NCBI RefSeq assembly: GCF_964188315.1
Contig: NC_135659.1
Location: 75,268,001-75,332,000 of the forward strand
DNA from: Podarcis muralis
Lineage: Eukaryota
Length of the DNA stretch: 64,000 nucleotides
Direction of reading: 5' to 3'
Both the position numbers and the translations under genes were made by a program. The number at the start of each line of letters is the position of its first letter. Position 1 is the stretch's first letter. The notes below the pieces were generated by a model. The model was given only the letters and a program-made list of their open reading frames with translations. It had not been told where the DNA came from and searched no databases. Below are positions 6,450 to 57,018 of the stretch, one piece after another.

Positions 6450-6491
<42 letters not shown>

Positions 6492-6618
6492 TTACTTCTA
6501 CCCCACCCATCTGACTGGGCTTCCCCAGCCACTCTGGGCAGCTTTCAACAGAACATTAAAAACAGAATAAAACTTCAAACATTAAAAACTTTCCTAAACA
6601 GGGCTGCCTTCAGATGTC
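6450..6618 (-). mobile_element. L2-type LINE 3' end with (AAT)n tail
   Basis: Matches the 3' end of the longer L2 fragment at 18312-18767 (cccatctgRctggg..ccccagccactctggg...agggctgccttcagatg). Confidence 0.8.
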
Positions 6619-6746
6619 AAACATTCTCACACATGTGCATATAACAACATGGATCTTGGAGTCTGGAGCCACAAAATTTTGTTGTTCTCACACGCACCAA
6701 TGAGAACGTGTGATCTAGAGAAGAAGCATGCCACAATAATGTAGAG

Positions 6747-6881
6747 CAGGCACCCCAACCTTTGGCCCTCCAGATGTTTTGGACTACAATTCCCATCATC
6801 CCTGACCACTGACCCTCTTAGCTTGGGATCATGGGAGTTGTAGGCCAAAACATCTGGAGGGCCACAGGTTGGGGGTGCCTG
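6747..6881. mobile_element. hAT-type MITE (palindromic, 135 bp)
   Basis: TIRs caggcaccccaacct / aggttgggggtgcctg with a perfect 8-bp TSD atgtagag. Same family as 56228-56363. Confidence 0.92.
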
Positions 6882-9469: not shown

Positions 9470-9765
9470 AGGGCTGGAAGAGGGAAGAAGCTTGTTTTCT
9501 CCTGCTCTGGAGTGTAGGACTGGCTTCAAGCTACAAGAAAGGAGATCCCAATTAAACATCAGGAAGAACTTTCTGAAAGTAAGAGCTGTTCGACAGTGGA
9601 ATGGTCTCCCATGGGAGGTTGTGGACTCTCCTTGCTTGGAGGTTTTTAGGCAGAGATTGGATGGCCATCTGTCATGGATGCTTTAGCTGAGATTCCTGCA
9701 TTGCAGGGGTTGGACTAGATGACCCTTGGGGTCCCTTCCAACTCTACAATTCTATGATTCTATGA
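9470..9765 (+). mobile_element. 5'-truncated CR1 (ORF2 C-terminus + 3' UTR + ATTCTATG tail)
   Basis: Translates to [28 protein letters not shown], homologous to the C-terminus of the intact ORF2; ends attctatgattctatga. Confidence 0.92.
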
Positions 9766-9769
9766 ATCC

Positions 9770-9875
9770 ACTACACTGTCAAGTGTCTCTTACTGTCAAA
9801 AAGTTCTTCCTGATGTTTAGTCGGAATCTCCTTTCTTGTAACTTGAAGCCATTGGTTTGAATCCTGCTCTCTAGA
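9770..9875 (-). mobile_element. CR1 internal fragment, inverted relative to the preceding copy
   Basis: The reverse complement reads ttcaagttacaagaaaggagattccgactaaacatcaggaagaac, homologous to about 9525-9600. Confidence 0.85.
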
Positions 9876-10384
9876 AAGGGAGATGTGTTAAGTATAATTG
9901 GTTTAATTCACACTGAAATGATAATGCCTGTGTATTGGTAAAAAGGTTTAACACGGAGTGATTCCACTGAAGGTTTAGAAAAGCAAGAAGAGCTCTCTAA
10001 GCTTTTTGCAGGTTAATAATTCTCTAGCAGCAGCTAACACATGAGTGTTTAACCCTAGATCACATGTCAAAGGTATTTGGTTGCAAATCTCCATGTTTCA
10101 GGGAGTTGCCTTTGGTTCTTTGTTCTCCCCAACTCTGTGGAGTGAGGATGTAAATGAAGCTTTCCATGTAAACAGTTCCAGGGAAAATGGAGGCTGGAAT
10201 GGGGGAGAGACAGAGTTAAGGTCTCAATCCTGTTTAAAGATATTTCTAAGAAGATGCTGTGCTGGATATGCACAAGATTTGGCTGCATCATTTGCGTGTT
10301 GAGTCCCACAATTGCCACCCCCAAAAAATTCACACTTCACACATCAATTTTTGTTTAGGTTTTTGGCATAATTTTGGCCACAAC

Positions 10385-10390
10385 TTTATT
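10385..10390 (-). terminator. Putative polyadenylation signal of the YR element
   Basis: AATAAA within aataaagttgtggccaaa. The same motif is conserved at about 21026 (+) and about 29406 (-) in the related units. Confidence 0.6.
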
Positions 10391-10736
10391 CAAATACAAA
10401 ATGTGAGTGGTTGCTTAGGCATTGGTTATGACTATCTGTCCATGCCCTCAGGGACAGAGCTGGCATTCCGGACACCAGCGGAATCCAGTGTGGGAAACAA
10501 GTATTGGGTGAGAAAGTGAAGCTGGGTCTCAGTCCCGCACTTCTCACCCTCTTGTTCCTGTGGGGCTTGCACGGCCCAAGTCCGATTCCAGGGACAAGGA
10601 CGAAAAGAATGGCAAGCCCCTGGATTCCTTTAACGGAATTCCCTTCGCTCATTTGGAGGGGTAGGCACTTACCCCTCCAAGCACCATTTAACCAATGCCT
10701 AACCGCCATAGAGCCCACAGCTCACCGCCAAACCAC

Positions 10737-11324
10737 TCACAACCCCAGCCAAGCCCTAAGCTTGGCCACCACTGCACCCAACCAAACCTCATTCCCGGAG
10801 GCAGAAAGGTGCACACCATCGGCTCTAAAAAGGGATGCCGCCTGAAAATGAATCATTGGGTGCGAAATCACATCTCCACCCAATTCGGACATCTTTCTGG
10901 CTACCGCAGAATTGATGCGTTTCCTGGCCCTCTCCGTAGCTGCCGGGCAACGACTGCCCCTCCAAATGCGGCGGCGCAGCAGCTTGGACCAAAATATTTT
11001 TGCTGTTGGCATCCACGCCCGCAGCACCTCCAAGTCACTTAATATTGCAGCACGCAGAGAAAAACAGTCCGTGGATACCAGGTCATTCTCACCCAGCTGC
11101 ACCACTATAGCCGTGGGCTCCCCTTCCAGGAGCAATTGCCTCTGGATTCGCGGCAAGAACTCGGACCAGCGCATTCCCCGTCTGGCCAGCCACGACAGCT
11201 GCACATGTGGAGGGAAGCCAAGGCCTGGACCCCATCTGGACTGCTGTGCTGCGACGCCCGCCCAATGGATGATGCTGTGCCCCACCATCCAGATGCGGAC
11301 AGCCACTAGACCTGAAGTAAACAA
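10737..11324 (-). CDS. SGNH/GDSL-family hydrolase of the YR element
   Basis: Block I VGHS, block II RRG, block III LGEND and block V DGVH give a full Ser-Asp-His triad. The track start is TTG and the first ATG is only at MVGHS. Confidence 0.88.
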   Translation of the reverse strand: MFTSGLVAVRIWMVGHSIIHWAGVAAQQSRWGPGLGFPPHVQLSWLARRGMRWSEFLPRIQRQLLLEGEPTAIVVQLGENDLVSTDCFSLRAAILSDLEVLRAWMPTAKIFWSKLLRRRIWRGSRCPAATERARKRINSAVARKMSELGGDVISHPMIHFQAASLFRADGVHLSASGNEVWLGAVVAKLRAWLGL

Positions 11325-11350
11325 ATAAACAATGTGAGAATCCCATATAA

Positions 11351-12232
11351 TCAGCGGACATAACCACGAAACGCATCCGACTTCCAGCGGCCCAAATCCT
11401 TTATTCTAGCAGCCGACAAACCCCAATGAGCCGCTGTCGTTGCCGCCCCAATCCTGAAGGAATGAGGGGCATAACCATAGGCCGTGCCATCGCAAGCCAT
11501 AATCGCCTTTCGCATCACCTGCGCAAACTGGCGCCTTGTTAGGGGCAGCCCATTTTCATGTTTAAACAAAGGCCCATCGCCTGGGGGACGCACTGCTAAG
11601 TACTTGTTAACATCTTTTACAGGGCAAGGGCCTGCCCCCCCCGTAGCAGGGAGACGAATGACGGCACCCCTACCCTTTTGATCCGTCTTTGAATTCCTCA
11701 CTGTAATTATTAGCTCTGCAGGGAATAGCTGAAGGTCCCGGAGCAAAAGGCCCCTAGAACGACCATCCTTGAGATCTTCCAACACAAGCTCACCCACTCT
11801 CAATGCTCCGAAGAAGGCAATAGAGAAGGCAGCCGAAAACAGGCGAGCCTCATACCCTGACCAACAAACCACCCGCAGCCTCTTACGCATCCTGCTTAGC
11901 AAGTCAAAAGAAATTGGGTGCCGTGGGGCTGGCTGAGAAGGGCGAAGCCTACCCCAGCCGTCCAAAGCCTTGCGCACAACAAACTTCGAACAAGGGTCTC
12001 TATCAAAAAATGTCTCACAGAAAAATGCTATAGCAGCTGCCTGAATCCTAATGGTCTTAGCTGCACGCCCCAGCTGAAATAAGTGCGCCAGATAACTTAA
12101 CACCTGCGCAGAGGAGGGGGGGACGCCTTTTAATTCGCTGGCAGCCCGGCGCATGAACGCCAAAAAATCGGACCAGGCCTTTGTGTAGGATCTAAGAGTA
12201 GAAGGGGAAACAGATGCCGCTACTCCCTGCAA
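11351..12232 (-). CDS. Tyrosine recombinase (DIRS/Ngaro type)
   Basis: N-terminal SPSTLRSYTKAWSDF helix, then LRVGEL (R), SKTDQ (K), HSFR (HxxR), GRW and terminal RGY (Y). The track start is TTG. Confidence 0.95.
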   Translation of the reverse strand: MQGVAASVSPSTLRSYTKAWSDFLAFMRRAASELKGVPPSSAQVLSYLAHLFQLGRAAKTIRIQAAAIAFFCETFFDRDPCSKFVVRKALDGWGRLRPSQPAPRHPISFDLLSRMRKRLRVVCWSGYEARLFSAAFSIAFFGALRVGELVLEDLKDGRSRGLLLRDLQLFPAELIITVRNSKTDQKGRGAVIRLPATGGAGPCPVKDVNKYLAVRPPGDGPLFKHENGLPLTRRQFAQVMRKAIMACDGTAYGYAPHSFRIGAATTAAHWGLSAARIKDLGRWKSDAFRGYVR

Positions 12233-12234
12233 AA

Positions 12235-14199
12235 CTAATTGCTGCCAAGGTTCCAGAGATGATCCGGGAAATATTCCGGACGTATCCGAGCCTCTGGAAC
12301 CAGGAGTCTGAACCGCTCCATCTGAAAACGGGACAGAGCATCAGCAATTTCGTTAGTCACCCCGGGAATAAAACGTGCAGAAAACACTATATTATAACGC
12401 AAACAGTGCAATACGAAGGCTCTTAATAAGGCGGACACCCTGGGTGAACGTGACGACAACTTTGCCAGCACGGACACCACTGCCTGGTTATCAGTCCAGA
12501 AGCAGACACGACGGTTCCTGAATTCCTCGACCCACAAATGCACGGCCACTGCAATGGGAAAAAACTCGAGAAATGTTAGGTCCCGTGAAATCTCTCCTCC
12601 CTGCCAGGCGGGCGGCCAACGCTCAGCACACCATCGCCCTTTCCAGTAAAGACCAAAACCCAGGGAACCTGCAGCATCCGAATGGACCTGAAAATCATTG
12701 CGCAGGTTCAACGTGTCCCGCCATAATGAAACCCCATTGAATTCCTCCAGGAATTCCAACCATATGGAAAGATCCGACCTCACCTCACTAGAGAGGCGCA
12801 CTCGATGGTGAGGAGCCCTCAACCCCACAGTGAGACGCGCCAAGCGTGAACAGAAAGGGCGCCCAGGCGCCACCACTCTACACGCGAAATTCAGGTGCCC
12901 TAACAGGGATTGGATTTGTAACAAGGAAACTTTCCTCAAAGGAAGCAGTTCCTCTATGACCTTCTTCAAGGCTACTAGCTTGTCACGTGGTAAACTAGAA
13001 GTCTGGGAAACTGTATCCAACAGGATACCCAGGTAGGTAAGCTGGGTAGACGGACCTTCCGTCTTTTCCGCTGCCAGCGGAACCCCCAGCTCCTGGGTAA
13101 GGTCAGCAAATGCTTGCAGCAACACCGAGCAATCGCCAGTGTCGTGGGCTGAGGCCAATAAAAAATCATCCAAGTAATGAGTGACTCCGCCCAGCCCTGT
13201 TTTGGATTTAAGAGCCCACTCCAAAAAGGTGCTAAAAGATTCAAAAGCAGCACACGCTATTGAACATCCCATAGGCATGGCCTTGTCAAAATAGAATTTG
13301 CCCTCAAACTGAAAACCCAGTAGCCAAAAATCATCCGGATGAATCGGGAGGAGGCGAAATGCCGATTCAATATCACATTTCGCCAATAGGGCCGCGCGGC
13401 CAAACTTCCGAATCATCTTGATCGCCTGATCAAGAGATGCATACTTCACGGAGCAACGCTCCGGAGGTATAGCATCATTAACTGAGGTGCCCCTAGGATG
13501 TGACAAATTATGGATTAGACGAAATTCACCTGGGGCCTTCTTTGGCACGATACCCAATGGGGATACATGCAAATTATGAAAAGGAGGGGCATCGAAAGGA
13601 CCAGCCATCCGATGCATGGCCAGCTCCTTTGCGATCTTTTTACGGGCAACCTCAGGCAACTCCCGAACTGATTTTTGATTAGCTGGATTCCGTGCCACGG
13701 GTGGCATGGCTACCGGAATCCGAAAACCAACAGAAAAACCATCAATCAAATAGCCGGCAGCGTCCCTATCAGGATAAGATTGCAGCCAATGTTGTAGTGC
13801 CGGCAAACGAACAGGGGTATGAGCTAGGGAGAACAACACCTCATTTTCCTGTGCCTGATGTAGAAGCGAGAGAGGTGTTTTGCTTGGGGGGTTGCTGAGA
13901 ACCCCCTTTTCCCCCACGAAAGGGCCGCCGATACCCAAAACAAGAGGAGGCAGGATGCGAGCCATTGCATTTCTCACATATGTGAGCGTACCTGCAACCT
14001 TGACGCTGACAAGAGCCCTTATTAAACTCCCAGCAAGGTAAGCGACGGCTGGACCTAAAAGCCGTATTCTTCGGCTTCTGTTGCTCTGGCACCTTTTTAT
14101 CGATGAGTGGAGCAACATAGGTGGTCCACACATCGAGATCCTTGCGATCCCACCGAGCTGATGGGATCCTGGCGGCGCGACGCCTAAAGTGTTCATCAT
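12235..14199 (-). CDS. Reverse transcriptase + RNase H
   Basis: RT motifs: FRLIHNLS, KCDIESAFR, MPMGCS, YLDDFL. RH motifs: SDAAG, LEFFPI, TDNQAVV, ADALSR. The ORF ends about 30 aa after the last RH motif, so there is no methyltransferase. Confidence 0.96.
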   Translation of the reverse strand: MMNTLGVAPPGSHQLGGIARISMCGPPMLLHSSIKRCQSNRSRRIRLLGPAVAYLAGSLIRALVSVKVAGTLTYVRNAMARILPPLVLGIGGPFVGEKGVLSNPPSKTPLSLLHQAQENEVLFSLAHTPVRLPALQHWLQSYPDRDAAGYLIDGFSVGFRIPVAMPPVARNPANQKSVRELPEVARKKIAKELAMHRMAGPFDAPPFHNLHVSPLGIVPKKAPGEFRLIHNLSHPRGTSVNDAIPPERCSVKYASLDQAIKMIRKFGRAALLAKCDIESAFRLLPIHPDDFWLLGFQFEGKFYFDKAMPMGCSIACAAFESFSTFLEWALKSKTGLGGVTHYLDDFLLASAHDTGDCSVLLQAFADLTQELGVPLAAEKTEGPSTQLTYLGILLDTVSQTSSLPRDKLVALKKVIEELLPLRKVSLLQIQSLLGHLNFACRVVAPGRPFCSRLARLTVGLRAPHHRVRLSSEVRSDLSIWLEFLEEFNGVSLWRDTLNLRNDFQVHSDAAGSLGFGLYWKGRWCAERWPPAWQGGEISRDLTFLEFFPIAVAVHLWVEEFRNRRVCFWTDNQAVVSVLAKLSSRSPRVSALLRAFVLHCLRYNIVFSARFIPGVTNEIADALSRFQMERFRLLVPEARIRPEYFPDHLWNLGSN

Positions 14200-15364
14200 A
14201 TTTTATCGCCGCTTTTTCACCGGCTTTGGTAAAGGCGGAGCGAACAATAGATAAGTAAACCATCAAATGAAGAGATCTCCGCGGGTAAGCCGCCACCACC
14301 ACGCCAGCAAAGACCTGGAAACAATCGAGCCATATCTCGAAAGTCCTATCTGAAGGGGAAACACCCTGGCGTTTATTTGACGATTTCCCTTTTTCCTGGT
14401 CCTCCGAAGGAGGGGCCAGTTTGAAAATGTCTACATAACGGCCGTTCAGTATCCTAGAGCGCAGTTTTGACGACAAATGTGCACCTGGGATTATGTCCCT
14501 GGCGGAATTGGTAGATACTTTAACGTCAGGTACCAAAACGCCATCCTTACACTCTTGCACCGCTCCATACCTTGCCCGGTGGGTGTTGGCCCTACGATCC
14601 CAAGCCCACCGAGGCAGCCCCGTCGATTCCCCAAAGCCCCAATAAAGTTCCCGTGAGGCTCCCGTCTCATCGTCAGAACTAGAAGATGACATACCAGAAG
14701 AAGAGGAAGATGATTCGCCCCTCCTCCTCTTGGCACGCTTCCGGGAAGACCTCCTGCGGCGGCGCTTTCCACCCGAAGACTTCCTGGCAGGGACTGGCAG
14801 ACTATCCTCAATGGAAGACTCAGAGTCAGGGCTCAGGTGTGATGCACCTGGAACTGATGGAGGAGAAACAACAAGTGAGAGGCCGGAACCAGATGCCACC
14901 TCCACGGAATGTTGGGTGCGTCCACTACGGCGGGAGGAAGCTGCCAGAGGGCTTTTCTTTCCCGTGGCTCTCCCAGAGGAACGGCGTGGCCTTCGCGAAC
15001 GGCCGCGAACGGCAGGTAAGTCGCAGGGCTGGGAAGTCTGGGCATCAGACAGCAAACCCCTAGATGAAGAGCCTTCTCTCTCATCTTCACTAGACGATGG
15101 TGACGCAGGAGACGACGCCGCTACCGGACGAGGACGACTCCCAGACGTGGAAGGCTGGGCAGAGCATTGTTGAAGGAGACCATCCATTTCGGCTGCGAAA
15201 CGAGACAAAGCAACTGGGTTGCCGGCCATGCTTTCCACCAGAGACTGCACCCGGCCCACTGGTTGCCTCGGGGTGGGAGAACGAAGCGCCTGCGATGGAC
15301 CTCTAATAGGCCGTTTTGCAGCGGAAGCCAGGCCGGGGCGGGCAGTGACTTTCTTGGGAGCCAT
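13841..15364 (-). CDS. Gag-like protein (Ser/Arg-rich, C-terminal CCCH + CCHC zinc fingers)
   Basis: 507 aa starting at ATG. Contains CWEFNKGSCQRQGCRYAH followed by CEKCNGSHPASSC, and overlaps the RT ORF by 359 nt. Confidence 0.9.
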   Translation of the reverse strand: MAPKKVTARPGLASAAKRPIRGPSQALRSPTPRQPVGRVQSLVESMAGNPVALSRFAAEMDGLLQQCSAQPSTSGSRPRPVAASSPASPSSSEDEREGSSSRGLLSDAQTSQPCDLPAVRGRSRRPRRSSGRATGKKSPLAASSRRSGRTQHSVEVASGSGLSLVVSPPSVPGASHLSPDSESSIEDSLPVPARKSSGGKRRRRRSSRKRAKRRRGESSSSSSGMSSSSSDDETGASRELYWGFGESTGLPRWAWDRRANTHRARYGAVQECKDGVLVPDVKVSTNSARDIIPGAHLSSKLRSRILNGRYVDIFKLAPPSEDQEKGKSSNKRQGVSPSDRTFEIWLDCFQVFAGVVVAAYPRRSLHLMVYLSIVRSAFTKAGEKAAIKYDEHFRRRAARIPSARWDRKDLDVWTTYVAPLIDKKVPEQQKPKNTAFRSSRRLPCWEFNKGSCQRQGCRYAHICEKCNGSHPASSCFGYRRPFRGGKGGSQQPPKQNTSLASTSGTGK

Positions 15365-15420
15365 ACCTGCTACTTGAAATCAAACAGAGAATAAACGGTT
15401 GCTATAGTCGAAGAAACAAA

Positions 15421-15462
15421 CCTATCTATCTATCTATCTATCTGTCTGTCACAATTTAATAT

Positions 15463-15493
<31 letters not shown>

Positions 15494-15540
15494 TATTTTT
15501 AATTGAGATTTATATTATTTATTTTATTATTTATTTGCCT
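15421..15540. repeat. (CTAT)n and (ATTT)n microsatellites inside the YR element leader
   Basis: Direct reading of the tandem tetramers. Confidence 0.9.
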
Positions 15541-16703
15541 TCCAGAGCCTGAGTCTGAAATTAAAAGGAGTGCACTTGCTCCCCTCAACCAGCAGGGGGC
15601 ACCTGATAACCCTTAAGCTCAGTTAGGGAAGACGCAACCTTGCCCTGAGCCACCAGGGGGAGCTCCCAACAGATCTCCCGGCTGCAGTGACACCGCTCGG
15701 CCACAAGGTGGAGCCGTCGGACGAACTGGCTGCAGCTACAAGGAAATCTCCTCGCGCAGAGAGCGCTATTGGGCCCCTTACACCAAAATGTCGGGCGCAA
15801 GCGCGGGCCGCCGCTCCCGATCCCCGGCGAGCGGCCCCGCCGCCTCTCGCCGGAAGGGAAGGAGGGGGAAGCCGGGCGACCGTTAGGCCAAGCCCTGGAC
15901 GCCGCTAGGCCGGCTCGCGGATACAGCCGCAGTCCGGCCTGATTCCCCCACAAAATCCGGCCGCTCGCGCCCTCACCGCCGGCACCAGCGACGAGCGGCG
16001 GAAAAGCCTCTCCCGCACCTCCGGGGGCAATTAATCGGGGAACCGTCCCCCCCCCCCACAGCGGATGCCGCCGCAGGCCTGGGGAGAGGCCAAGGAACCG
16101 CACCGTCCCTTCTCAATCCCCGGCGGCCGCGAGCAGGTAAGGGGCAAGCTTAATTTTTTAAACGGAAAAACAGGGGAAAGAGGAAAAAAAAAAAGGAAAG
16201 AAAAGGGGGGGAGGGGGCCTTAAGGCAGCGGGACTTCAAGGCCCGAGCAGGCCTACCGTGCGCACCAGCCACGAGCTCCCAGCCGCGGCACCGGGGACGA
16301 GCGCCCTCAAAAAAGGGGGGGGGGGTGCCTAAGCAGCAGCCGCGGCGGCAGCCGGCAGCGAGCGACCCAAAAATTAATAAAAGGCCAGGTACCTAGCCCA
16401 AAGGCAGGTACCCGGAAGGCCGGGGGGGGGGGGACCCACCCTCAGGCCTATGGCTGTAGTCCACTCAATTTAAGTTAAGTAAAGGTAAAAGGATAAGAAA
16501 ATCAGTAGGGAGAGGATCAGGAAGAATGGGGCGATGGGAGGAAAAAACGCTAGAAGAAGGTAAGGGAGAGAGAGGAGGACAAAATCAAACGAGGCCAGGG
16601 AGTGACGAGGGAAAATTAGGAATTTGGGTAGGCCCAAGGAAAGCGAAAGTGAAAGGTGAATACAACCGTCTCCAGCAGCTCCTGATCCGATGCAAAAACG
16701 GCC

Positions 16704-16740
16704 AAGAGGAAGTCCAACCTCTGGCCCCCTGTATTTATAA
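16704..16740 (-). promoter_or_regulatory. Putative TATA box and initiator of the YR element
   Basis: Minus strand TTATAAATAC (16740-16731), then ACTTCCTCTT (16713-16704) about 26 nt later. CTTCCTCTT...GCATCGGAT is conserved in the 20315 unit. Confidence 0.6.
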
Positions 16741-18311
16741 CCTCTAACCCCTCCCAAATTCTCCTCACACGAAAAATCCCCGGCAACCCAATTTTAACCC
16801 CTTAGGAGGCTTGGGTTTACCAAATCTGCCTAATCACGGTCAGGTGGCTTGTTTCCCCCAACCGCAACACGTGCTCTCTGTTAAGGAGAACACGCTTTAC
16901 TGTTTATTTTAAAGAAAGTTCTGCAAAGTAAGCTTGGAATAATATTTTCATGGGTCTGGGCAATCTTCATTCCAAAAGGGCTCAGTTTTTATGCATCCAG
17001 TTACTTCATGCTGCACAATATTAATATCTGCAGAAAGTTGAAAGTCATCTTAATTCTGCCTGGTAAAGTTGGCACAGAAGTTGTTCTCTTAATATATAAA
17101 CAGCAGCATGACACTCAGAAGGTGCATTGCATGGAGTTCCATGCATGGAGTTCCACTTCAGTGAAGTGGGTGATTCAAATGGCATTTGCATAGACATAAT
17201 TCCATGTGCATATTTTTTTTTTAGAATATAGGGTGCAGCAACATGCTGGACTGCTTTCAGGATGAAACAAAAATGGTTCTATCTCCCTATGAATTAAAGG
17301 GAGAAGGTCAGATTAATAAATTCAAGCTGTTGCTTCCTGTCTTCAAATGGTTTTTGAACTCTATTTTTTTTTTTTTTTTTTTGCCAATCACCTTTTGCCA
17401 AAGGAGAGGCAGAGTTATTCCAGGAGGGTAACCTGAGTTATTATCAGAGTCTCCTTTTTCTTGTCTTGCTCCTGGTGCTGTGGCTCCCAATGTGAAGGGC
17501 AAAAATAAGAATAAAAAAAATACGGAGGATGCCTTTTATATGCCCTACATTAGCAAAAACACCAGATTGAGAGGATCAGAAATGGAAACTGCATTTCTCT
17601 TTTGAAAAGGTAGAGCGCTGATAGCATCTGTTTATCCTTCCCACGCTTCCGAACTCCTGCTGGGAGCTGCAGACTTCATCTAAGAAGACTGTACAGAAGA
17701 TTGCATACTTGATGATATACATGTGGGCAAAAAATGCTGACTATCTCCTCCAGAAACCCTCTATCCCTGAATGGCTCTAGATTAATTCTGGCATTATCAA
17801 GTTTGTTCATTTGTAGGCAAAATAGGATGGGTGATGCCTGCTGTGAGCCTCAACTTTCAAATAAGAGGAAGATATTGGATTGCACACTTGATGATATGGC
17901 TGTGGACCCAAACTCTGAAAATCTCCTTGTCAAATGTTTATAGCTTTGAATGATTATGGAGCATTGCTGCTATTATCAAAGCCCAGGCATTTTTAACAGA
18001 AAACAGGATTTCTAAGTCCCTGCTGTTTTCAGCTAAAGGAGAATATTTATTGCATTTTTATCCCACCCTCCATCCAACCAACCAACCAACCAACCTGTAA
18101 TGTCCCAAGGGAAGATACCAGGTTGCACTTTTGATGCACAGGTTGCCAAATCATAGAATAGCCCCTTTGTGATTCTGCATCCATCTATGTCTAAGAAATG
18201 CTAGTCATCTTGTTTTGGGGTACAATAGAATCTGATAGCATTTCATTTAAGAAGAATAGGATCTTTTGCTAGATTTGAAGCCAAATAGTTATTCCTAAAG
18301 TTATACCAAAT

Positions 18312-18767
18312 AGTAGTAGTAGTAGTAGTAGTAGTAGTAATAATAATAATAATAATTTATTATTTATACCCCGCCCATCTGGCTGGGTTTCCCCAGCCAC
18401 TCTGGGTGGCTTCCAACTGAATATTAAAAACAGTACAGCATCAAACATTAAAAACTTCCCTAAAGAGGGCTGCCTTCAGATGACTTTTAAAAGTAAAATA
18501 GTTGTTTATTGCTTTGACATCTGCTGGGAGGGCATTCCACAGGGCAGGCGCCACTACCGAGAAGGCCCTCTGCCTGGTTCCCTGTAACCTTACTTCTCAC
18601 AATGAGGGAACCGCCAGAAGGCCCTCGGCGCTGGATCTCAGTGTCCGGGCTGAACGATGGGGGTGGAGACGCTCCTTCAGGTATACTGGACCGAGGCCGT
18701 TTAGGGCTTTAAAGGTCAGCACCAACACTTTGAATTGTGCTCGGAAACGTACTGGGAGCCAATGCAC
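18312..18767 (-). mobile_element. L2-type LINE 3' fragment
   Basis: The minus strand translates HWLPVRFRAQFKVLVLTFKALNGLGPVYL...RAFSVVAPALWNALP, a typical L2 ORF2 C-terminus, and ends in a (TAA)n/(TAG)n tail. Confidence 0.9.
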
Positions 18768-18944
18768 ATCTCTCAGAACTGTTTATGCCAAACAGATAAT
18801 AGCTATAAAACTTTGAGCTGATCTAGGACTTTAATCTAGTGGTTTCAGTTACAGGTCTAGAGCACTGGTCACTGGATGCTATGCACACACAAAGACAGTG
18901 TGTGCTGTTTTGAAACCATAACATCAGCAAGACACATCAGCATC

Positions 18945-19047
18945 CCCTGTTCAATTCCCATCATCCCTGACCACTGGTCCTGTTAGCTAGGGATGATGGG
19001 AGTTGTAGTCCCAAAACATCTGGAAGGCCGAGTTTAGGGATGCCTGC
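18945..19047. mobile_element. Partial hAT MITE (6747 family)
   Basis: Carries aattcccatcatccctgaccactgg...gggagttgtagtcccaaaacatctgga and the right TIR only. Confidence 0.75.
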
Positions 19048-19137
19048 TCTAGAACTCACTGGATTCTAGGGAGCAGGCATTTGAGAACCAAGGTACCACT
19101 GTGTGTGTGTGTGTACATACACAGAGAGAGCAAGAGA

Positions 19138-19481: not shown

Positions 19482-20314
19482 CTGCTAAACCTTTCTTTGG
19501 TGTCCAAAGCATACTGAGCATTGCACGAAACATAAAAGTGCTGTGTGATTCCTGTCTGTTTTGGAAAGAAGAAGAGAACAGAGGGAATGAGAATAGGAGA
19601 GGAATAAAGAAAGCAATATGACAGATGGTCAAGGAGAGGATTAAGTGGTAAGAGAGGGAACGAAACAAACTATGGAGGTGCAGCTGTAATAAGTTAGCTT
19701 TGAAATGGAGCATAAAGATAGAGAGCAGGCTTTATCCACATGTGCCGGCGGTGTGGCTATTGGAGGCAGAGGGAGCAGTATGGCAGAGGTACAGTGGCAG
19801 GACAGGAACAAAAGAGGTCAATCGCAGATGAACAAAGGTGGCAAGTAGCAGGTGCGCTGTCCCAATTTATTTTGGCTGCACTGCTAGGGAATATCACTGA
19901 GAAGCAGAATGCTGCAGAGCTATTGTTGTTCCAAAGGATGGTGTGTTCCAGGTATCCTGCTGGAAGCCATAACCCTGTGTGAAAGTCATTCATCATGTGT
20001 CGCCCTCTTTTATCATGGTGTCAAGGACTGGCCCACTTGCTCAGTGGTGTGCAGGATGGTCATCTTGACTTCAAGCAGGAATCCTGAAGGGAACCATGGG
20101 GGGGGGGGTGATATTGTGAAGCTGATGGCGAGCAAGTGGAAATGTCTATAATAAAGTATTTCTGTTACAGTTACAATCCTCTCCCCTTCTTGGTGCAGAA
20201 ACAGAACTAGGTGCATTTTCATACAGCAGACCCAATTTCCTGCCATCTTTTTTACTATGTAGAACCTGTTTAGTGCTTAGAGTTCCCCCTCATCTTGTAG
20301 GTTTTCTTTACAAA

Positions 20315-21120
20315 GCGTGTTCTCCTTCATGGAGAGCACGTGTTGCAGTGGGGGCCGACAGGACACTCCAAAGTTGTGGGGCGGGCTAATGGATCGTTAG
20401 CCACTGATGCGATTGGGCTTCCCTTGTTGGGAAGAAGTTAATGTTGCCATTTGTTGATTGACAGCCAGAAATGCTAAAACTCCCTGCAAGAGGCATAGAG
20501 CTTCCTCTTTTCACCCCGTGCATCGGATTGCCCGCCCTCCCTATATTTAGGGTTGTTCACTTTGACCTTGCTATGCCTGTCATGGGGTCATCTGCTCTTG
20601 GGGCAGGGGCCCGGTAGGAATTTTGTCCATCTGGCTGATTGGCTGGGGCCATTTGGTTTTTTCCTACTGCATAGCAAATCATCACAACTTGTAAGGTTGC
20701 GGTTAAGCATTGTTTTATGGTTTGGTTGGTTGAGGGGCATGGAATGGCTGTGCCTGCCCCTCTAATGCTGCTGCTGCAAGGGATTCCGTTAAGGGAATAC
20801 AGGGGCTCACTATTGCTTTTGTGCACCCTGTCAAGGGGCTCAGGCCATGCAAGAGCCCCTGGTTGCATTTGGGAAGGGCTGAGGGCAGCTTCCCTGCTCC
20901 GTCGCTACCCCCAAGTGTATTCCCCTTTCTTACTTTTGCAGGTGTGCGGAATGTCAGTCTGTCCCCCACTGGGGGGCAGATAGTCACAATCAATGCCTAA
21001 GCAACCACTCACATTTTTGAATTTTAATAAAGTTGTGGCCAAAATTATGCCAAAAACCTTAAACAAAAATTTATGTGTGATGCGTGAGTTATTGGGGTGG
21101 CCCTGGGGACCTCGACACGC
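20315..21120 (+). mobile_element. ORF-less 806-bp YR-element unit (solo A-B repeat or non-autonomous derivative)
   Basis: The first ~35 nt match the 5' end of the big element. The last ~430 nt are homologous to its 3' end, about 85% by eye over the terminal 150 nt. Flanks are AAA and AA. Confidence 0.88.
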
Positions 21121-21295
21121 AATCAGAGGAGACATGTAGCATCTCCCCTTCTTGATTTGGAGGTGCAGCAATAGATTTCACCAAGAAAAGTATACAGGAC
21201 ACATTTAAAGCCCGCTGTTAGATCCATTTGTGATTCAATTGCAAAAAAAGAAAAAAGAAAAGAGAGAGAGCATTTACTGTGTTTATTGTTTTTTT

Positions 21296-22035: not shown

Positions 22036-23845
22036 GTTCTGATGCAGCATGAAATGGGATGTAGCCAGGAAATCTTGATCATAACAATTTGATAACAGCC
22101 TCCTTTGCTGAATTTATATGGTTTTGTTCCATTTGGAATGGTTTTGTGTGTTTTTAAATTTCAATGCTTTTTTCTTCTTTTAAAAAATAACAATATTTTT
22201 ATTGTTTTAACCCACCCTCTTATCTTACAGTAAGGGCAGGTAAGAAATTTTGTAATAAAAGTAATAAAAGTAATAAAAACAACAAGTAATAACAAGTAAT
22301 AAAAACATAGAATAAAAATAACAAGTAATAAAAACAAAGAATTTTTATTCACAATTTTCAAATATTTATCCACACTTTTCATTGTTTTGGGGGGCTCCTG
22401 TGATTTTGTTTGATATTCTCGCTACACAATCTTCCCACATAATATTCTCTTAATGCCCCCCCCCCCCAAGAGCTGGGTGCAGAGAAGCAGCCTGTTTTGT
22501 ACGTCACTCATGGAAATCATTTCAGTATTGCTCTTAAAAGAAATGTTGTTTAAGAAATAGGCCGAAATCTGATTGTACTAATACAACTTTTCCTCTATCA
22601 GTGCTCTTTGCAAGTCTACCTGAATTATATCATTGCAATCAAGGCCAAATTCTAAAATTGTAAAGGGTAGATTTAATAAAATTTCTCTTTCTCTTTCCCT
22701 TTCTCTTTCACTCTCTCTCTCACACACCCCTCAGCCCCTTGTCCTCACTCCCCAAAGAACTTTGTGATACTCTCTGGGGGGCATTTGAATAGCTCCAAAA
22801 TACTGTTGCAGTGCTCTTACAAATAGCATATTAATGGCCATTAGCAGACATTTCACTCCCATTCCATATTATAAGGCAGTGGATTGATAGACATCTGAAT
22901 GGGGTAATATAATTAATAGTTCCATACTGATGAATGATTCAGCCCAATCAAGGCATCATTCTGATTGAGGGAGAAAGGAAAATTAGGAAAATGGTTCTTC
23001 TGCAATCACCTCTCCCATTTTTTTATTTTTAAAAGTATGTTTCAGTTCTTATTTCATAGACATGAAGCTAGAACCTGAAAGGTTGAAATGCTTTATTCAG
23101 GGTAAACTGCTGTGCAATTGATTTGGAGTTTAGAATGATCAAAGCTGTGCTCGGGTTTATGGGAATGCTTCCAGAACATCCTAATCTCCTTTTCCTTTAT
23201 AGAATATACAGGGCTTGTGACTTTTATAGTGAGTCGAGATATTTCAGAATCAAATTTGTTAGTTTATCAAAGGACATGCAGCCACTTATTGGCAAAGACT
23301 ATAAATCAACGAACATGCATAATTAAAAGCCAGTTCATAGGAACAATGGCAGCTCTAGGTTTTGCGAGGCTGCCAGGCAAGATGTTATGAGTGGCCTTCT
23401 CCCTACAGCTCCCCACCTGTTCTCCCTCTGCCAGTCTCCAATGCTTCCCCAAGAAAAAGGAGTAGAGAAGTGAACAGGTAGTGGCACTGTTGTTTCTTCC
23501 TGCTCACTCTCATTGCTTGCAGGCATTCTCCCTTTGTACTAAATCAAGTGGGTGAGCAATGACAAAAGGAACAAGTCTAGGGGGCTGTGTCCAAAACCAC
23601 CAACCTCCTGGCCCTGCATATGAACGTATTGCTGTCTGAATTTTGAATATGTTGAAGCTATGTGGCAAGTGCTTTACTGATCATAATTTTGAGTTGACCT
23701 TAGGGCTGGGCATTCAGGTAAGAAATTTCTTGACCACATTGCCACATGTCAACTGCTGTGTGTGAAGCCACACAACCTATGTTCTTAGTTTATTAACTAA
23801 CTAGAATATCTGAATTGGCCTTTGATAAACATCTTAATATATATA

Positions 23846-24087
23846 CAGTGGTACCTCAGGTTACATACGCTTCAGGTTACAGACACTTCAGGTTACAGAC
23901 TCTGCTAACCCAGAAATAGTACCTCGGGTTAAGAACTTTGCTTCAGGATGAGAACAGAAATCGTGCTCCAGCAGTGCTGCAGCAGCAGGAAGCTCCATTA
24001 GCTAAAGTGGTGCTTCAAGTTAAGAACAGTTTCAGGTTAACCATGGACCTCCGGAACAAATTAAGTTCTTAACCCGAGATACCACTG
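23846..24087. mobile_element. Tc1/mariner (Tigger-like) MITE
   Basis: TIR cagtggtacctc / gagataccactg with TA flanks. Confidence 0.9.
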
Positions 24088-24490
24088 TAGTCTATATGGG
24101 TGGTTTTTTTTGGGGGGGGGGTGTTCCTAGTCATGGACAGCTAGACAGAGCTGTTTAAATGCTTCCCAAAAGGTCTTGAAGAGCAGAGCCTAGGGAACAA
24201 GGAACTCTTGAGTTTGTCTGACTAAACCCCATTTGTACAAAATAGTGCTGTGCAGATACTGAGCACAGGTGTACAGGCTATAAAATGAAAGCAAAGCTCT
24301 TAGGTCTGCTTCATTAAGAATCAAGGCCATAGTGTGTTGGGTGTAGACTAGGCCCTGTGGAACTGTTTTAACTAAGGTTAACTTTGGGTGCTCTTGGTAG
24401 GAAACAATTTATTTCAGTATCACAGTATAGAAGAAACTCAGGTTTTGGAAGTGGTTTTCCATGTGATGATATTAATGTAGGATATTATCG

Positions 24491-24744: not shown

Positions 24745-25338
24745 ATTATCACAATGGACTATAATGAAAAAAAGGACTGCTCTAGCAAATGGAAGACCCA
24801 TTGAAATCAAAAGTGAGATCTCAGTTGCCTGTAAATAAAAGTACTTGTTTTAGTATTCCACAGGTAAGTGAGGCACTGCTTCTTTACAGAAGACCAGTGT
24901 TTTATGGCTTCTCATGAGTGGCCAGGGAAGAACCCAAGGTTGACCACACGTGGCCCATGAAATTACTGACTTCACCAGGACTCACATTCCTGCACTTGGA
25001 AATATGAGTCTTGAAGGTCCAAAATGCTCGTCTCAAATATGAAGTAAGCACTGTGGCCCATGATTTGTCTCTATCTGAATATAGGTATCAGTTTGGTTTG
25101 ATTCATATATAAACTGAACTATTTTCTGATTAATTGGGGAAATAGCCCAGTTTATTTCCAAGCCAATCTACTTTGTGCTGGGATGAGCTTGCCCTTCCAT
25201 CAGGGAGGATGTTGCTTCATACATTGTCTTCACCTGCCTTAAGCAGCTGCTGCAGTTCAGTATTTGTTGCACTGGAATGCCGAAATAAATAGCATGGTAA
25301 GACTGCCGATTGAAAGAATAAAGAAACTTAAGGTTGAT

Positions 25339-25593
25339 GAAGAAGAAGAAGAAGAAGAGTTTGGATTTGATATCTCGCCTTTCACTCCCTTTAAGGAGTC
25401 TCAAAGCGGCTAACATTCTCCTTTCCCTTCCTCCCCCACAACAAACACTCTGTGAGGTGAGTGGGGCTGAGAGACTTCAAAGAAGTGTGACTAGCCCAAG
25501 GTCACCCAGCAGCTGCATGTGGAGGAGTGGAGACGCGAACCCAGTTCCCCAGATTACGAGACTACCGCTCTTAACCACTATACCACACTGGCT
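25339..25593 (-). mobile_element. tRNA-derived SINE (Squam3-like)
   Basis: Head agccagtgtggtatagtggttaagagc with B box gggttcg, and a (TTC)n tail. Confidence 0.88.
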
Positions 25594-55027: not shown

Positions 55028-56227
55028 GGCTAACCCTATATCTTGGACTACAAAACTCAAGGAAAAAGGTTCCTTTTGCACTGCTATAACAACGTTTATC
55101 CTAAGCAACATAACTTGTGGGGGTGGGGAGTTTGCAGCTAGGGTAGGAAAGGAAACAAGAGGCAAGTTTTGGTTATGTAGCAATCTTGCTTTTCTTTAAT
55201 TAGTCTAATTACTTATTACACTTATTTCATTTTTGAATTGCATCTCAAAACAATTTCACAACACAATAAAAATGTATATAAAACAACTGGATATATATCT
55301 GTGTGTCTGTCTGTTAAAATAACCAAGAAGGTATGGTGGTAAAGGAGACGATGGTGAGTTTACAGAGAGAGCAAGGTTTTAGGATTACTTATCCGTAATC
55401 TGGCTGGTAAATTTAAAGAGGCAGGTAAAAGGGCAAAGATTGCTTCCTTTTCTCTCCAACTGAAACAAGATAAACCAAGAGCGGATTGCAAACTATAAAG
55501 GCTATTTACACAAGTTCATGTGAAATTGTCAACTATGCAAATCAAAGTACATGTTGGTAAATATTAGGGGTGAGGGCATAACGGTATTAATCATACTCTT
55601 AGTTTAGTGCAAAATCATCATTTCCTTCACATTAAATTTGAGAGAGGTGTGGTTAATGCTCCCTTTTAAATGACACATTTATGCTTTGCTTGTGATGAAA
55701 ATTATTGCAGGTGACATTTTAATTTAAAGTGCTACTGTAATTCTTAGATGTATTATCAACCTGAAATGAATTTATTTTTAAAACACCATAGTAAGCATTA
55801 AAAAAGAAATCGGTGTTTCAACAGATCTCTATTATAACAATACTATATATATTTCAGGAACTTTTTAACATTTTTGTTTAGAACTGAATCTAATAATGCT
55901 ATGTCAACTTTATTGTCTCACTGGAATAGCCATTTTCCATTCATTCCACCCCCACAACTCCTTTTTTATTTAATACTTACAAGAAGTGCATTGTAAATGA
56001 ACAATTCAAGCACTCAAGTGGGCTACCGGGTACCTGTACCTTGGTGGGCTCAGCTGGTCGGGGTGGGGGCAGCTATGGACTAGCTGCTCTTTTGTTTCAG
56101 TTTATAACTTTCTACTAACAAGACTCCTGCCCTGGGCCTCAGACAAGCTCTGCATGGGCTTGCTTAGAGTATATCAAGTAAAGTCAGTATGCTTTAATAA
56201 CTTAGGTTTCAGTGAATCTAATTAGAG

Positions 56228-56363
56228 CAGGCTTCTTCAACCTCGGCCCTCCAGATGTTTTTGGCCTACAACTCCCATGATCCCTAGCTAGCAGGACCAG
56301 TGGTCAGGGATGGTGGGAATTGTAGTCTCAAAACATCTGGAGGGCCACGGTTGAGGAAGCCTG
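56228..56363. mobile_element. hAT MITE (6747 family)
   Basis: TIRs caggcttcttcaacc / ggttgaggaagcctg and a perfect 8-bp TSD aattagag. Confidence 0.92.
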
Positions 56364-56764
56364 AATTAGAGTATGGCTCAGTTGTATGCGATGAAATGAG
56401 AGCGATCCCATGCTAGTCATACTCAAAGTGTTGCTGGCATCTGTCTGTCTTGAGAGACAACAAACCATGGCGTTACTAGCACCAAAATGACCATCCCAGG
56501 GCACAAGCCTGGGCATTGTGCATGGACGTGACTCGTACTTCCAAAATGTTGCTTCGTGGAATCTATTTTATGTTGTCTGCAAAAGTGTACTAAACCTTCT
56601 ATTTTATTTAAATTACAGTAATGTGCTCCACACAATTCTTGTTCTTTTATTGTTTGACTTGTCATTGTGTCGTTGTTTTGAAAACTCAAGAAACGTCCTT
56701 TATTTTTCAAACTCCCATTCAGGAAAGAGTATAGATCTATGGGAGCATTCTATGGGGTGGCCCT

Positions 56765-57018
56765 GAGAGCCAGTGTGGTGTAGTGGTTAATAGTGGTAGT
56801 CTTGCAATCTGGGGAACCGGGTTCGCATCTCTGCTCCTCCACATGCAGCTGCTGGGTGACCTTGGGCTAGTCACACTTCTCTGAAGTCTCTCAGCCCCAC
56901 TCACCTCACAGAGTGTTTGTTGTGGGGGAGGAAGGGAAAGGAGAATGTTAGCCGCTTTGAGACTCCTTCAGGTAGTGATAAAGTGCGATATCGAATCCAA
57001 ACTCTTCTTCTTCTCTTC
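56765..57018 (+). mobile_element. Squam3-like SINE, full length
   Basis: Starts gagagccagtgtggtgtagtggtt, has B box gggttcgc and a TTC tail. Confidence 0.88.

Follow-up and report, generated by a model that had tools for sequence, protein, structure and literature searches.

A Ngaro-type retrotransposon with four ORFs lies on the minus strand of the 64-kb stretch of Podarcis muralis DNA analysed here (64,000 nucleotides, referred to below as the window, 100% identical to GCA_964188315.1 OZ076958.1). The copy has no split direct repeats, which raises the question of whether it belongs to a lineage replicating by an undescribed route or descends from an ordinary member of its family. The locus was reached via NCBI model P0144. 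Read directly on the coding strand, the element begins with AAA (16898-16896) followed by GCGTGTT (16895-16889) and finishes with AACACGC (10300-10294) followed by AAA (10293-10291). Joining these ends gives a perfect 7-3-7 palindrome, AACACGC-AAA-GCGTGTT; the chance of a given 7-mer meeting its own reverse complement at the opposite end is 4^-7 (~6e-5). An 806-bp unit located 3.4 kb from the element has a head and tail that match the element's ends, starting with AAA-GCGTGTT (20312-20321) and finishing with GACACGC-AA (21114-21122). Both sets of ends are as given in the preliminary description.

Inside the element, a repeat search (seed 9) returned direct and inverted repeats that were all short and at chance level, and self-BLAST with word size 7 produced zero off-diagonal matches at E<=0.01, in agreement with the earlier observation that neither end has a second copy inside the element. 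Over the full 64 kb of the window, the 216-bp A and the 418-bp B were present only at the two ends of the element and in the 806-bp unit. Since internal copies of A and B are absent and repeats are at chance level only, the window copy possesses neither split direct repeats nor an ITR/ICR arrangement.

Seven full-length sister copies from the same assembly (L001, L002, L003, L007, L008, L009, L010) were compared with the window copy, giving an eight-copy sample that is skewed to copies annotated as genes. All seven sisters have split direct repeats in the order A1-ORFs-B1|A2-X-B2, with A1 and A2 of 209-220 bp (99-100% identity), B1 and B2 of 418-427 bp (~100% identity; range 99-100%) and a unique spacer, X, of ~175 bp between A2 and B2, placing the two B repeats only ~385 bp apart. 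The B1|A2 junction reads AACACGC-AAA-[G/T]CG[T/G]GTT in every sister. The closest copy, L007, has 87.8% identity in the coding part and 96.7% in B, and its real junction differs by one base within the 17-bp site from the virtual junction of the window copy. The usual genomic form of the family is AAA-A1-[5'UTR-ORFs]-B1-AAA-A2-X-B2-AA(A), and the repeat boundaries of the seven sisters independently support the element boundaries given here. The X module is kept from frogs to lizards (including the X. tropicalis copy L011) and is absent from the window copy. Rfam and ARAGORN searches over 9-22 kb found no known RNA and no tRNA-like element, so X is neither a member of a known RNA family nor a tRNA-derived SINE head. 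A primer-binding site or polypurine tract was also considered as a reading of X. The window copy itself is A1-[ORFs]-B without the ~800-bp A2-X-B2 module, and no homology to A, X or B was found downstream of its B. Homologous recombination, deletion by the tyrosine recombinase (YR) and the insertion of a resolved A-int-B circle all give one and the same sequence, from which the mechanism behind the A-int-B form is unreadable. A Zootoca locus (L004) was set aside as a comparison copy because it is degenerate, has a different tail (GGATCGC-AAA) and has no recognisable 5' end.

All four ORFs are open in the window copy (Table 1). ORF1 gave zero matches to Pfam and an exact-protein look-up with the window's gag found nothing on record; its homologues in P. 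muralis have 64-85% identity. Homologues of ORF2 occur in lizards and frogs, some carrying the UniRef name ribonuclease H, and the best non-squamate RT matches are Xenopus proteins with ~50% identity, one of whose loci (L011) has Ngaro-type split repeats. The ORF3 translation carries ALRVGEL, NSKTD, HSFRIGAAT and GRWKS...RGY (R/K/HxxR/W/Y motifs). In NCBI model P0144, as placed by tblastn on the element, ORF4 is an exon from 11311 joined to the gag N-terminus, with the donor after 14695. A1 contains a TATAAATA box at 16739-16732. The A boundary (...GCATCGGATCA), set at the point of divergence between A1 and A2 in the sister copies, follows 49 nt further on. The B repeat contains AATAAA at 10390-10385 and terminates in the left palindrome arm.

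Table 1. Features of the element and of the solo unit in the window (positions on the window; YR, tyrosine recombinase).
Feature	Position	Strand	Basis or remark
Element with four ORFs, Podarcis muralis, Ngaro-type retrotransposon	10291-16898	-	
Left AAA, shared core / microhomology with target	16896..16898	-	Read directly
A1 repeat, ~216 bp including AAA	16683..16895	-	Aligns to A1/A2 of L001 and L007
A-head block, GCGTGTTCTC-loop-GAGAGCACGTGTTGCGG	16856..16895	-	Right palindrome arm, 9-bp hairpin and third ACGTGTT motif
5' untranslated region, GC-rich, simple repeats	15365..16682	-	Read directly
ORF1, gag-like, 507 aa, zinc-knuckle-like Cys/His cluster	13841..15364	-	Homologues in P. muralis
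ORF2, reverse transcriptase / RNase H, 654 aa	12235..14199	-	RVT_1, E 3.6e-13 (Pfam)
ORF3, tyrosine recombinase, 293 aa	11351..12232	-	Phage_int_SAM_4 and Phage_integrase, both under Pfam's cut-off
ORF4, GDSL/SGNH hydrolase	10737..11324	-	Lipase_GDSL_2, E 4e-5 (Pfam); also Lipase_GDSL
B repeat, one copy here, ~415 bp	10294..10708	-	96.7% identity to L007 B1/B2, 89.7% to L001
Right AAA core	10291..10293	-	Read directly
Solo A-X-B unit, diverged subfamily	20312..21122	+	A 20312-20530, X 20531-20697, B 20698-21120, then AA

The junction is where the preliminary description fared best. It had proposed that the joined ends rebuild a palindromic site and that integration occurs at AAA; the predicted palindrome is present at the real B1|A2 junction of the seven sisters, where 7-bp inverted arms flank AAA, and also in RNA contigs of P. 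muralis. B-tail|A-head and A-end|X junctions were found, as loose ends, in both DNA and RNA data of this species. In all nine insertions examined, AAA directly precedes the A head and AA or AAA directly follows ACACGC, a pattern that fits a crossover within a 2-3-bp core with no true target-site duplication. Around the junction, three motifs form an extended FRT-like layout, the single-strand fold of this region has z-scores of -3.1 and -3.9, and fold computation places a 9-bp stem in the A-head block. This block is the most repeated in the DNA contigs, with a summed word depth of ~48,600 compared to ~25-35 on single-copy parts, while the 5' untranslated region has a word depth of 17-40, about single copy at >=93% likeness. 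A comparison of the flanks with all sequences examined found no paralogous empty site. We consider AACACGC-AAA-GCGTGTT at B1|A2 a probable YR recombination site of which the two element ends are the half-sites, and the flanks support AA(A) as its putative crossover core.

With moderate confidence, we read the window copy as a young four-ORF Ngaro copy that carried split repeats at integration and lost A2-X-B2 by recombination between B1 and B2. On this reading it is a regular deletion product of its family and gives no evidence for a new mode of replication; of the origins raised in the preliminary description, removal of A2 by B1xB2 recombination fits best. The element would most likely have integrated as a normal split-repeat copy, presumably via a circular intermediate, through a crossover between the B1|A2 junction and a genomic AA(A), which would leave the core at both ends without a true duplication. 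Later recombination between the two identical ~420-bp B repeats would have excised the module, as in solo LTR formation, and the reciprocal event between A1 and A2 would yield solo A-X-B units. The 806-bp unit would be one of these; a 74% alignment over X and B to A2-X-B2 of L001 and L007 was obtained for it. Against the deletion, neither an A2-X-B2-bearing allele nor an empty site was seen among the sequences examined.

The family is young and probably active in P. muralis. The window copy itself lacks A2 and X, and its promoter-proximal A lies upstream of the likely transcription start site (TSS); it probably cannot regenerate, but its proteins could act in trans. The TATA box and the A boundary together predict a TSS ~190 nt inside the element. 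The window copy yields hardly any RNA in the runs analysed, which accordingly displayed no start pile-up at a TSS and no poly(A) pile-up; a single RNA contig of low depth (16521-16754) starts upstream of the TATA box.

A tentative alternative to deletion between the B repeats is site-specific recombination, in which the element's YR joined the full B1|A2 site with a terminal half-site, or split an intermediate with two sites into an [A-int-B] circle and an [A-X-B] circle, each integrating on its own, making the window copy and the 806-bp unit the two resolution products. Every sister copy has a complete palindromic site precisely at B1|A2, the FRT-like layout and fold scores are in keeping with such a site, both predicted products are present in the window, and the abundance of the A-head terminal block across very many copies suggests many solo units. 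However, homologous recombination would give products of identical sequence. If the integrating form were a circle carrying two equal sites, the permuted order A-X-B-A-int-B would be expected often, yet none of the seven split-repeat copies shows it. The subfamily of the window copy is about single copy, giving no sign that the A-int-B form has spread. A broader and more speculative version, which we consider improbable, is that a split-repeat Ngaro is a cointegrate of a coding [A-int-B] and a small conserved non-coding [A-X-B], each with one B|A recombinase site, that the YR resolves and re-integrates at the DNA level. If this were true, the two products would both stand free in the window, and Ngaro elements would pass through a DNA phase like that of Cryptons besides retrotransposition.

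Assembly collapse, in which a true B1-A2-X-B2 locus had its two B copies merged by the assembler, is conceivable because B1 and B2 are 100% identical in sisters. It is nevertheless very unlikely, since this arrangement of identical repeats is resolved in the assembly at seven further loci and in a sister family, and the contigs of an independent individual are at single-copy depth over the 5' UTR (evidence that speaks to the 5' UTR and not to the 3' end). Equally doubtful is a deletion during reverse transcription. Retroviral reverse transcriptases often delete direct repeats of their template, and a comparable template switch between B2 and B1 of the RNA could give a shortened cDNA that integrates; if RNA is the source from which the repeats of the family regenerate, the genomic RNA must hold B1 together with a part of B2. 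The promoter part of A1, however, could not be templated once the cDNA had lost A2, and the window copy nevertheless has a complete A1. Least probable of all is the undescribed route raised in the preliminary description, a lineage without any split repeats that would replicate or move, for example, as a DNA circle via the YR: four open ORFs and perfect half-sites would suit it, but seven of the eight sampled full-length copies, including the closest relative L007, are canonical A1-ORFs-B1-A2-(X)-B2 (the finding that the description had itself set against this idea), the X module kept from frogs to lizards is missing here, and the subfamily is about single copy.

The main value of the locus is therefore negative, in that no new replication route is indicated and the siblings explain a copy without split repeats. 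A young, probably active lizard family with a defined 17-bp palindromic junction, a putative AA(A) crossover core and a spacer X kept from frogs to lizards is nevertheless useful for studying the Ngaro replication cycle. Junction, core and spacer offer concrete substrates on which the tyrosine recombinase of a eukaryotic retrotransposon can be tested biochemically.

Compared with known systems, the element encodes RT/RNase H together with a tyrosine recombinase rather than a DDE integrase, and it carries an SGNH hydrolase ORF after the YR with no methyltransferase (MT), as in vertebrate Ngaro members. The split direct repeats A1-[ORFs]-B1-A2-B2 expected of Ngaro are lacking in the window copy but present in the seven same-assembly family copies. 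The family resembles the vertebrate elements DrNgaro1 and Xenopus DIRS-53_XT / DIRS-54_XT (gag-like, RT/RH, YR and an extra SGNH-hydrolase ORF, split direct repeats and no methyltransferase), from which the window copy differs in having neither A2 nor B2. In the lizard family and in X. tropicalis L011, A2 and B2 are parted by the ~175-bp unique X, whereas the usual A1-B1A2B2 scheme shows no spacer. Ngaro copies and a consensus without split repeats occur in Xenopus alongside copies having them (10.1101/2021.08.05.455354), and isolated AB repeats occur in Cafeteria (PMC8547959). Cryptons have a YR without reverse transcriptase, whereas an open RT ORF is present here. DIRS1-like elements carry ITRs, an internal complementary region and a methyltransferase domain, all absent from this element, in which inverted repeats are at chance level and Pfam found no MT domain. 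They start and finish with the same trinucleotide, matching the junction, and recombination with an identical genomic triplet has been modelled for them without a TSD (PMC3266345); this 3-bp rule is matched here with the core AA(A).

The putative recombination site resembles FRT and loxP in its short inverted arms round a central spacer, and FRT in a third directly repeated arm-like motif 22-29 nt off. It differs in that the sequence common to the target is 2-3 bp compared to spacers of 6-8 bp. As in the proposed deletion, solo LTRs form by recombination between direct repeats of one element, after which a solo repeat or part of the element stays behind between the original flanks, whereas split repeats allow two products, A-int-B and A-X-B, both of which are in the window. 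A parallel comes from Trypanosoma cruzi, whose SIRE has the 5' and 3' ends of VIPER on either side of an exclusive internal region and corresponds to the A2-B2 region (PMC6681497). The Repbase VIPER consensus is without 3' repeats, as is the window copy. Host kingdom and sequences differ, and the exclusive region of SIRE is ~30 bp compared to ~175 bp here, but SIRE stands to VIPER as the 806-bp A-X-B unit, the probable reciprocal solo module, stands to the full element.

All seven other full-length members of the family examined from the same Podarcis muralis assembly (L001, L002, L003, L007, L008, L009, L010) carried canonical split direct repeats. A1 and A2 were 209-220 bp long and 99-100% identical, B1 and B2 were 418-427 bp long and 100% identical, and B1 adjoined A2 to form a real AACACGC-AAA-GCGTGTT junction, with minor variants TCGTGTT (L003, L008) and GCGGGTT (L007). 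The closest copy, L007, shared 87.8% identity with the window copy in the coding part and 96.7% in B, and its real junction differed by one base within the 17-bp site from the virtual junction made by joining the window copy's ends. The preliminary description had proposed that the family may replicate without split repeats by an undescribed route; because the seven sister copies all have them, most of the full-length copies sampled show A1-ORFs-B1-A2-B2, the layout it had itself set against that proposal, which therefore finds no support.

The window copy has the layout A1-[5'UTR-ORFs]-B. Read directly, it starts AAA-GCGTGTT (16898-16889) and ends AACACGC-AAA (10300-10291), and the joined ends give a perfect 7-3-7 palindrome (7/7 complement by chance, ~6e-5). 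The 806-bp unit opens with AAA-GCGTGTT (from 20312) and closes with GACACGC-AA (to 21122). The palindromic ends described previously thus stood, as did the statement that neither end recurs inside the element: a repeat search returned short matches at chance level only, a word-7 self-BLAST gave no off-diagonal matches, and across the whole window A and B occurred only at the window copy's ends and in the 806-bp unit, with nothing resembling A, X or B downstream of B. Short interspersed repeats belonging to several families (60-260 bp, 77-98% alike, in either orientation; 1877-2130, 6452-6850, 9516-9851, 18320-19051, 23840-24096, 25321-25593, 44996-45314, 56223-57014) fill the surrounding DNA, none touching the insertion point.

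The window copy is 6,608 bp long (10291-16898, minus strand) with four open reading frames. The translated recombinase retained ALRVGEL, NSKTD, HSFRIGAAT and GRWKS...RGY motifs, which we take to be the catalytic R, K, H-x-x-R, W and Y of the tyrosine recombinase (YR) family. The closest relatives of its RT and gag ORFs were from Podarcis muralis, and the NCBI gene model P0144 was 100% identical to part of its gag. The P0144 locus (L006) matched the window at 100% identity over 24 kb, which places the window in P. muralis assembly GCA_964188315.1, record OZ076958.1. P0144 (414 aa) joins 15364-14695 to 11311-10737 on the minus strand, splicing the first 223 gag codons to the hydrolase ORF (donor G|GTATGT after 14695; acceptor ...acttcag| before 11311), and gene models of 413, 414 and 369 aa lie at L002, L003 and L010. 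Such gag-hydrolase models at several copies suggest that the hydrolase is expressed from a spliced subgenomic mRNA. Simple repeats of (GATA)n and (AAATA)n-like type are present at 15409-15540, in the 5' UTR immediately before gag. The gene set, with its extra hydrolase and without a methyltransferase, is that described for vertebrate Ngaro elements (10.1101/2021.08.05.455354; PMC7192593).

Coding regions of the window copy and positions of the spacer X
Feature	Position	Strand	Detail
gag-like ORF	window 13841-15364	-	507 aa
RT/RNase H ORF	window 12235-14199	-	654 aa; RVT_1, E 3.6e-13
Tyrosine recombinase	window 11351-12232	-	293 aa; weak Phage_int_SAM_4 and Phage_integrase matches
GDSL/SGNH hydrolase	window 10737-11324	-	195 aa
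X	window 20531-20697
X	L001:11755-11929
X	L007:15299-15473
X	L005:13949-14124
X	L011:13967-14140

The layout of the sister copies recurred with other terminal sequences in L005, a sister Ngaro family of the same genome, and in L011, a Xenopus tropicalis copy. L005 (5971-14490) begins A with AGACTCTCC and ends B with CGAACCACAA, termini unlike those of the window copy's family; it keeps the A1-int-B1|A2-X-B2 plan with 100% identical repeats, and its junction has no obvious palindrome and a shared core of at most one or two A. In L011 (7728-14622; A 184 bp, B 482 bp) the overlap between B1 and A2 is TG, which also stands at both outer ends, and the two arms of the junction make an imperfect inverted repeat, GGGTCA-TG-TGAGCCC. 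From the TG overlap and outer ends, a short shared core looks general for Ngaro.

In the seven sister copies and in both L005 and L011, A2 and B2 were not adjacent: a unique spacer X of ~175 bp lay between them, whereas the usual Ngaro scheme has no spacer there. X was more conserved than the middle of A, could be aligned among the window copy's family, L005 and the 806-bp unit, and had no Rfam or tRNA match; in L011 it measured 174 bp with a similar C-rich start (CCC[A/G]CCC.CCCTCCC). A2-X-B2 measured 804-820 bp in the copies compared, and the 806-bp unit shares this layout, which makes it a solo A-X-B module from a diverged subfamily.

P. muralis data (one DNA run, two raw RNA runs and one RNA contig set) were mapped to 11000-16999, passing over the simple repeats at 15409-15540. 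Word depth was 17-40 in the window copy's 5' UTR and ~21-35 in single-copy parts, placing its subfamily near single copy at at least 93% likeness, with no sign at that likeness that the A-int-B form has multiplied. Summed word depth reached ~48,600 over the first 43 nt of A (16856-16898) and ~4,500 over the last ~33 nt (16683-16715), against ~25-35 for single-copy DNA, so both end blocks are common to very many diverged copies and the middle of A is subfamily-specific; since summed depth is not copy number, the sharing copies can be put only on the order of a thousand. Within the first 43 nt the sole variant listed at at least 10% was 16884, in the hairpin loop. Loose ends at 16898 in RNA contigs read ...GGGTGGTTTTGTGTGACTCAACACGC before AAAGCGTGTT (coding orientation), a B-tail|A-head junction, and those at 16695 (DNA) and 16683 (RNA reads) read GCATCGGATCA then CCCGCCC...TTTTATAGGGTGG, an A-end|X junction. 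Both junction types are thus present in independent P. muralis data, derived from subfamilies other than the window copy's.

A TATA box, TATAAATA, occupies 16739-16732, and the siblings' A1 and A2 diverge 49 nt downstream of it. With a start ~20 nt inside the A boundary, the end of A would act as an R-like segment, and read-through across B1-A2 would be needed to copy the promoter part of A. The window copy was almost silent in the RNA runs read and gave no start or end pile-ups there, so the start stays a putative one. On that start, its own RNA would be unable to rebuild the first ~190 nt, in agreement with the preliminary description; lacking A2 and X, it is probably a dead end that could still supply protein. 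One RNA contig of low depth (16521-16754) has its start upstream of the TATA box and could reflect read-through or DNA carry-over.

Recombination between B1 and B2 of a normal copy would yield A1-[5'UTR-ORFs]-B, the form of the window copy, and the reciprocal A1xA2 event a solo A-X-B. The simplest route is homologous recombination of the two B repeats, which are identical, 420 bp long and ~385 bp apart, comparable to the formation of solo LTRs. The same sequence could also result from YR action at the B1|A2 junction or from integration of a resolved [A-int-B] circle. The absence of the permuted A-X-B-A-int-B arrangement from all seven split-repeat copies argues against a circle carrying two equal sites being the form that usually integrates. 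Assembly collapse, also raised previously, is unlikely, since at seven other loci this assembly resolves the same structure with repeats that are 100% identical.

We compared nine insertions: the window copy, the 806-bp unit and the seven sister copies. The left flank ended in AAA in 9/9, and the right end was AA, with A as the next base in four cases and C or T in five; the internal B1|A2 junction has a single AAA. This pattern fits a crossover that joins the junction to a genomic AA(A) and creates no true duplication. The A head contains a 9-bp hairpin (CGTGTTCTC / GAGAGCACG) and a third ACGTGTT motif, and the real junction, folded as single-stranded DNA, formed an imperfect palindrome of ~22 bp (z = -3.1 and -3.9). 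The earlier reading of the joined ends as a candidate recombinase site is sound and agrees with known YR retrotransposons.

The flanks match the rule for DIRS1-like elements, in which the junction trinucleotide occurs at start and end and recombination is modelled with an identical genomic triplet (PMC3266345). Two inverted arms with a third, direct arm recall FRT, as a resemblance only. For the solo A-X-B unit, a published parallel is SIRE of Trypanosoma cruzi, which has an internal region exclusive to it between the 5' and 3' ends of VIPER and corresponds to VIPER's A2-B2 region (PMC6681497); isolated AB repeats are also on record for Cafeteria Ngaros (PMC8547959). Ngaro copies that lack split repeats, and even Repbase consensus sequences of this kind, occur in Xenopus beside copies that have them (10.1101/2021.08.05.455354), and the window copy shows a derivative form of which related families already provide documented examples.
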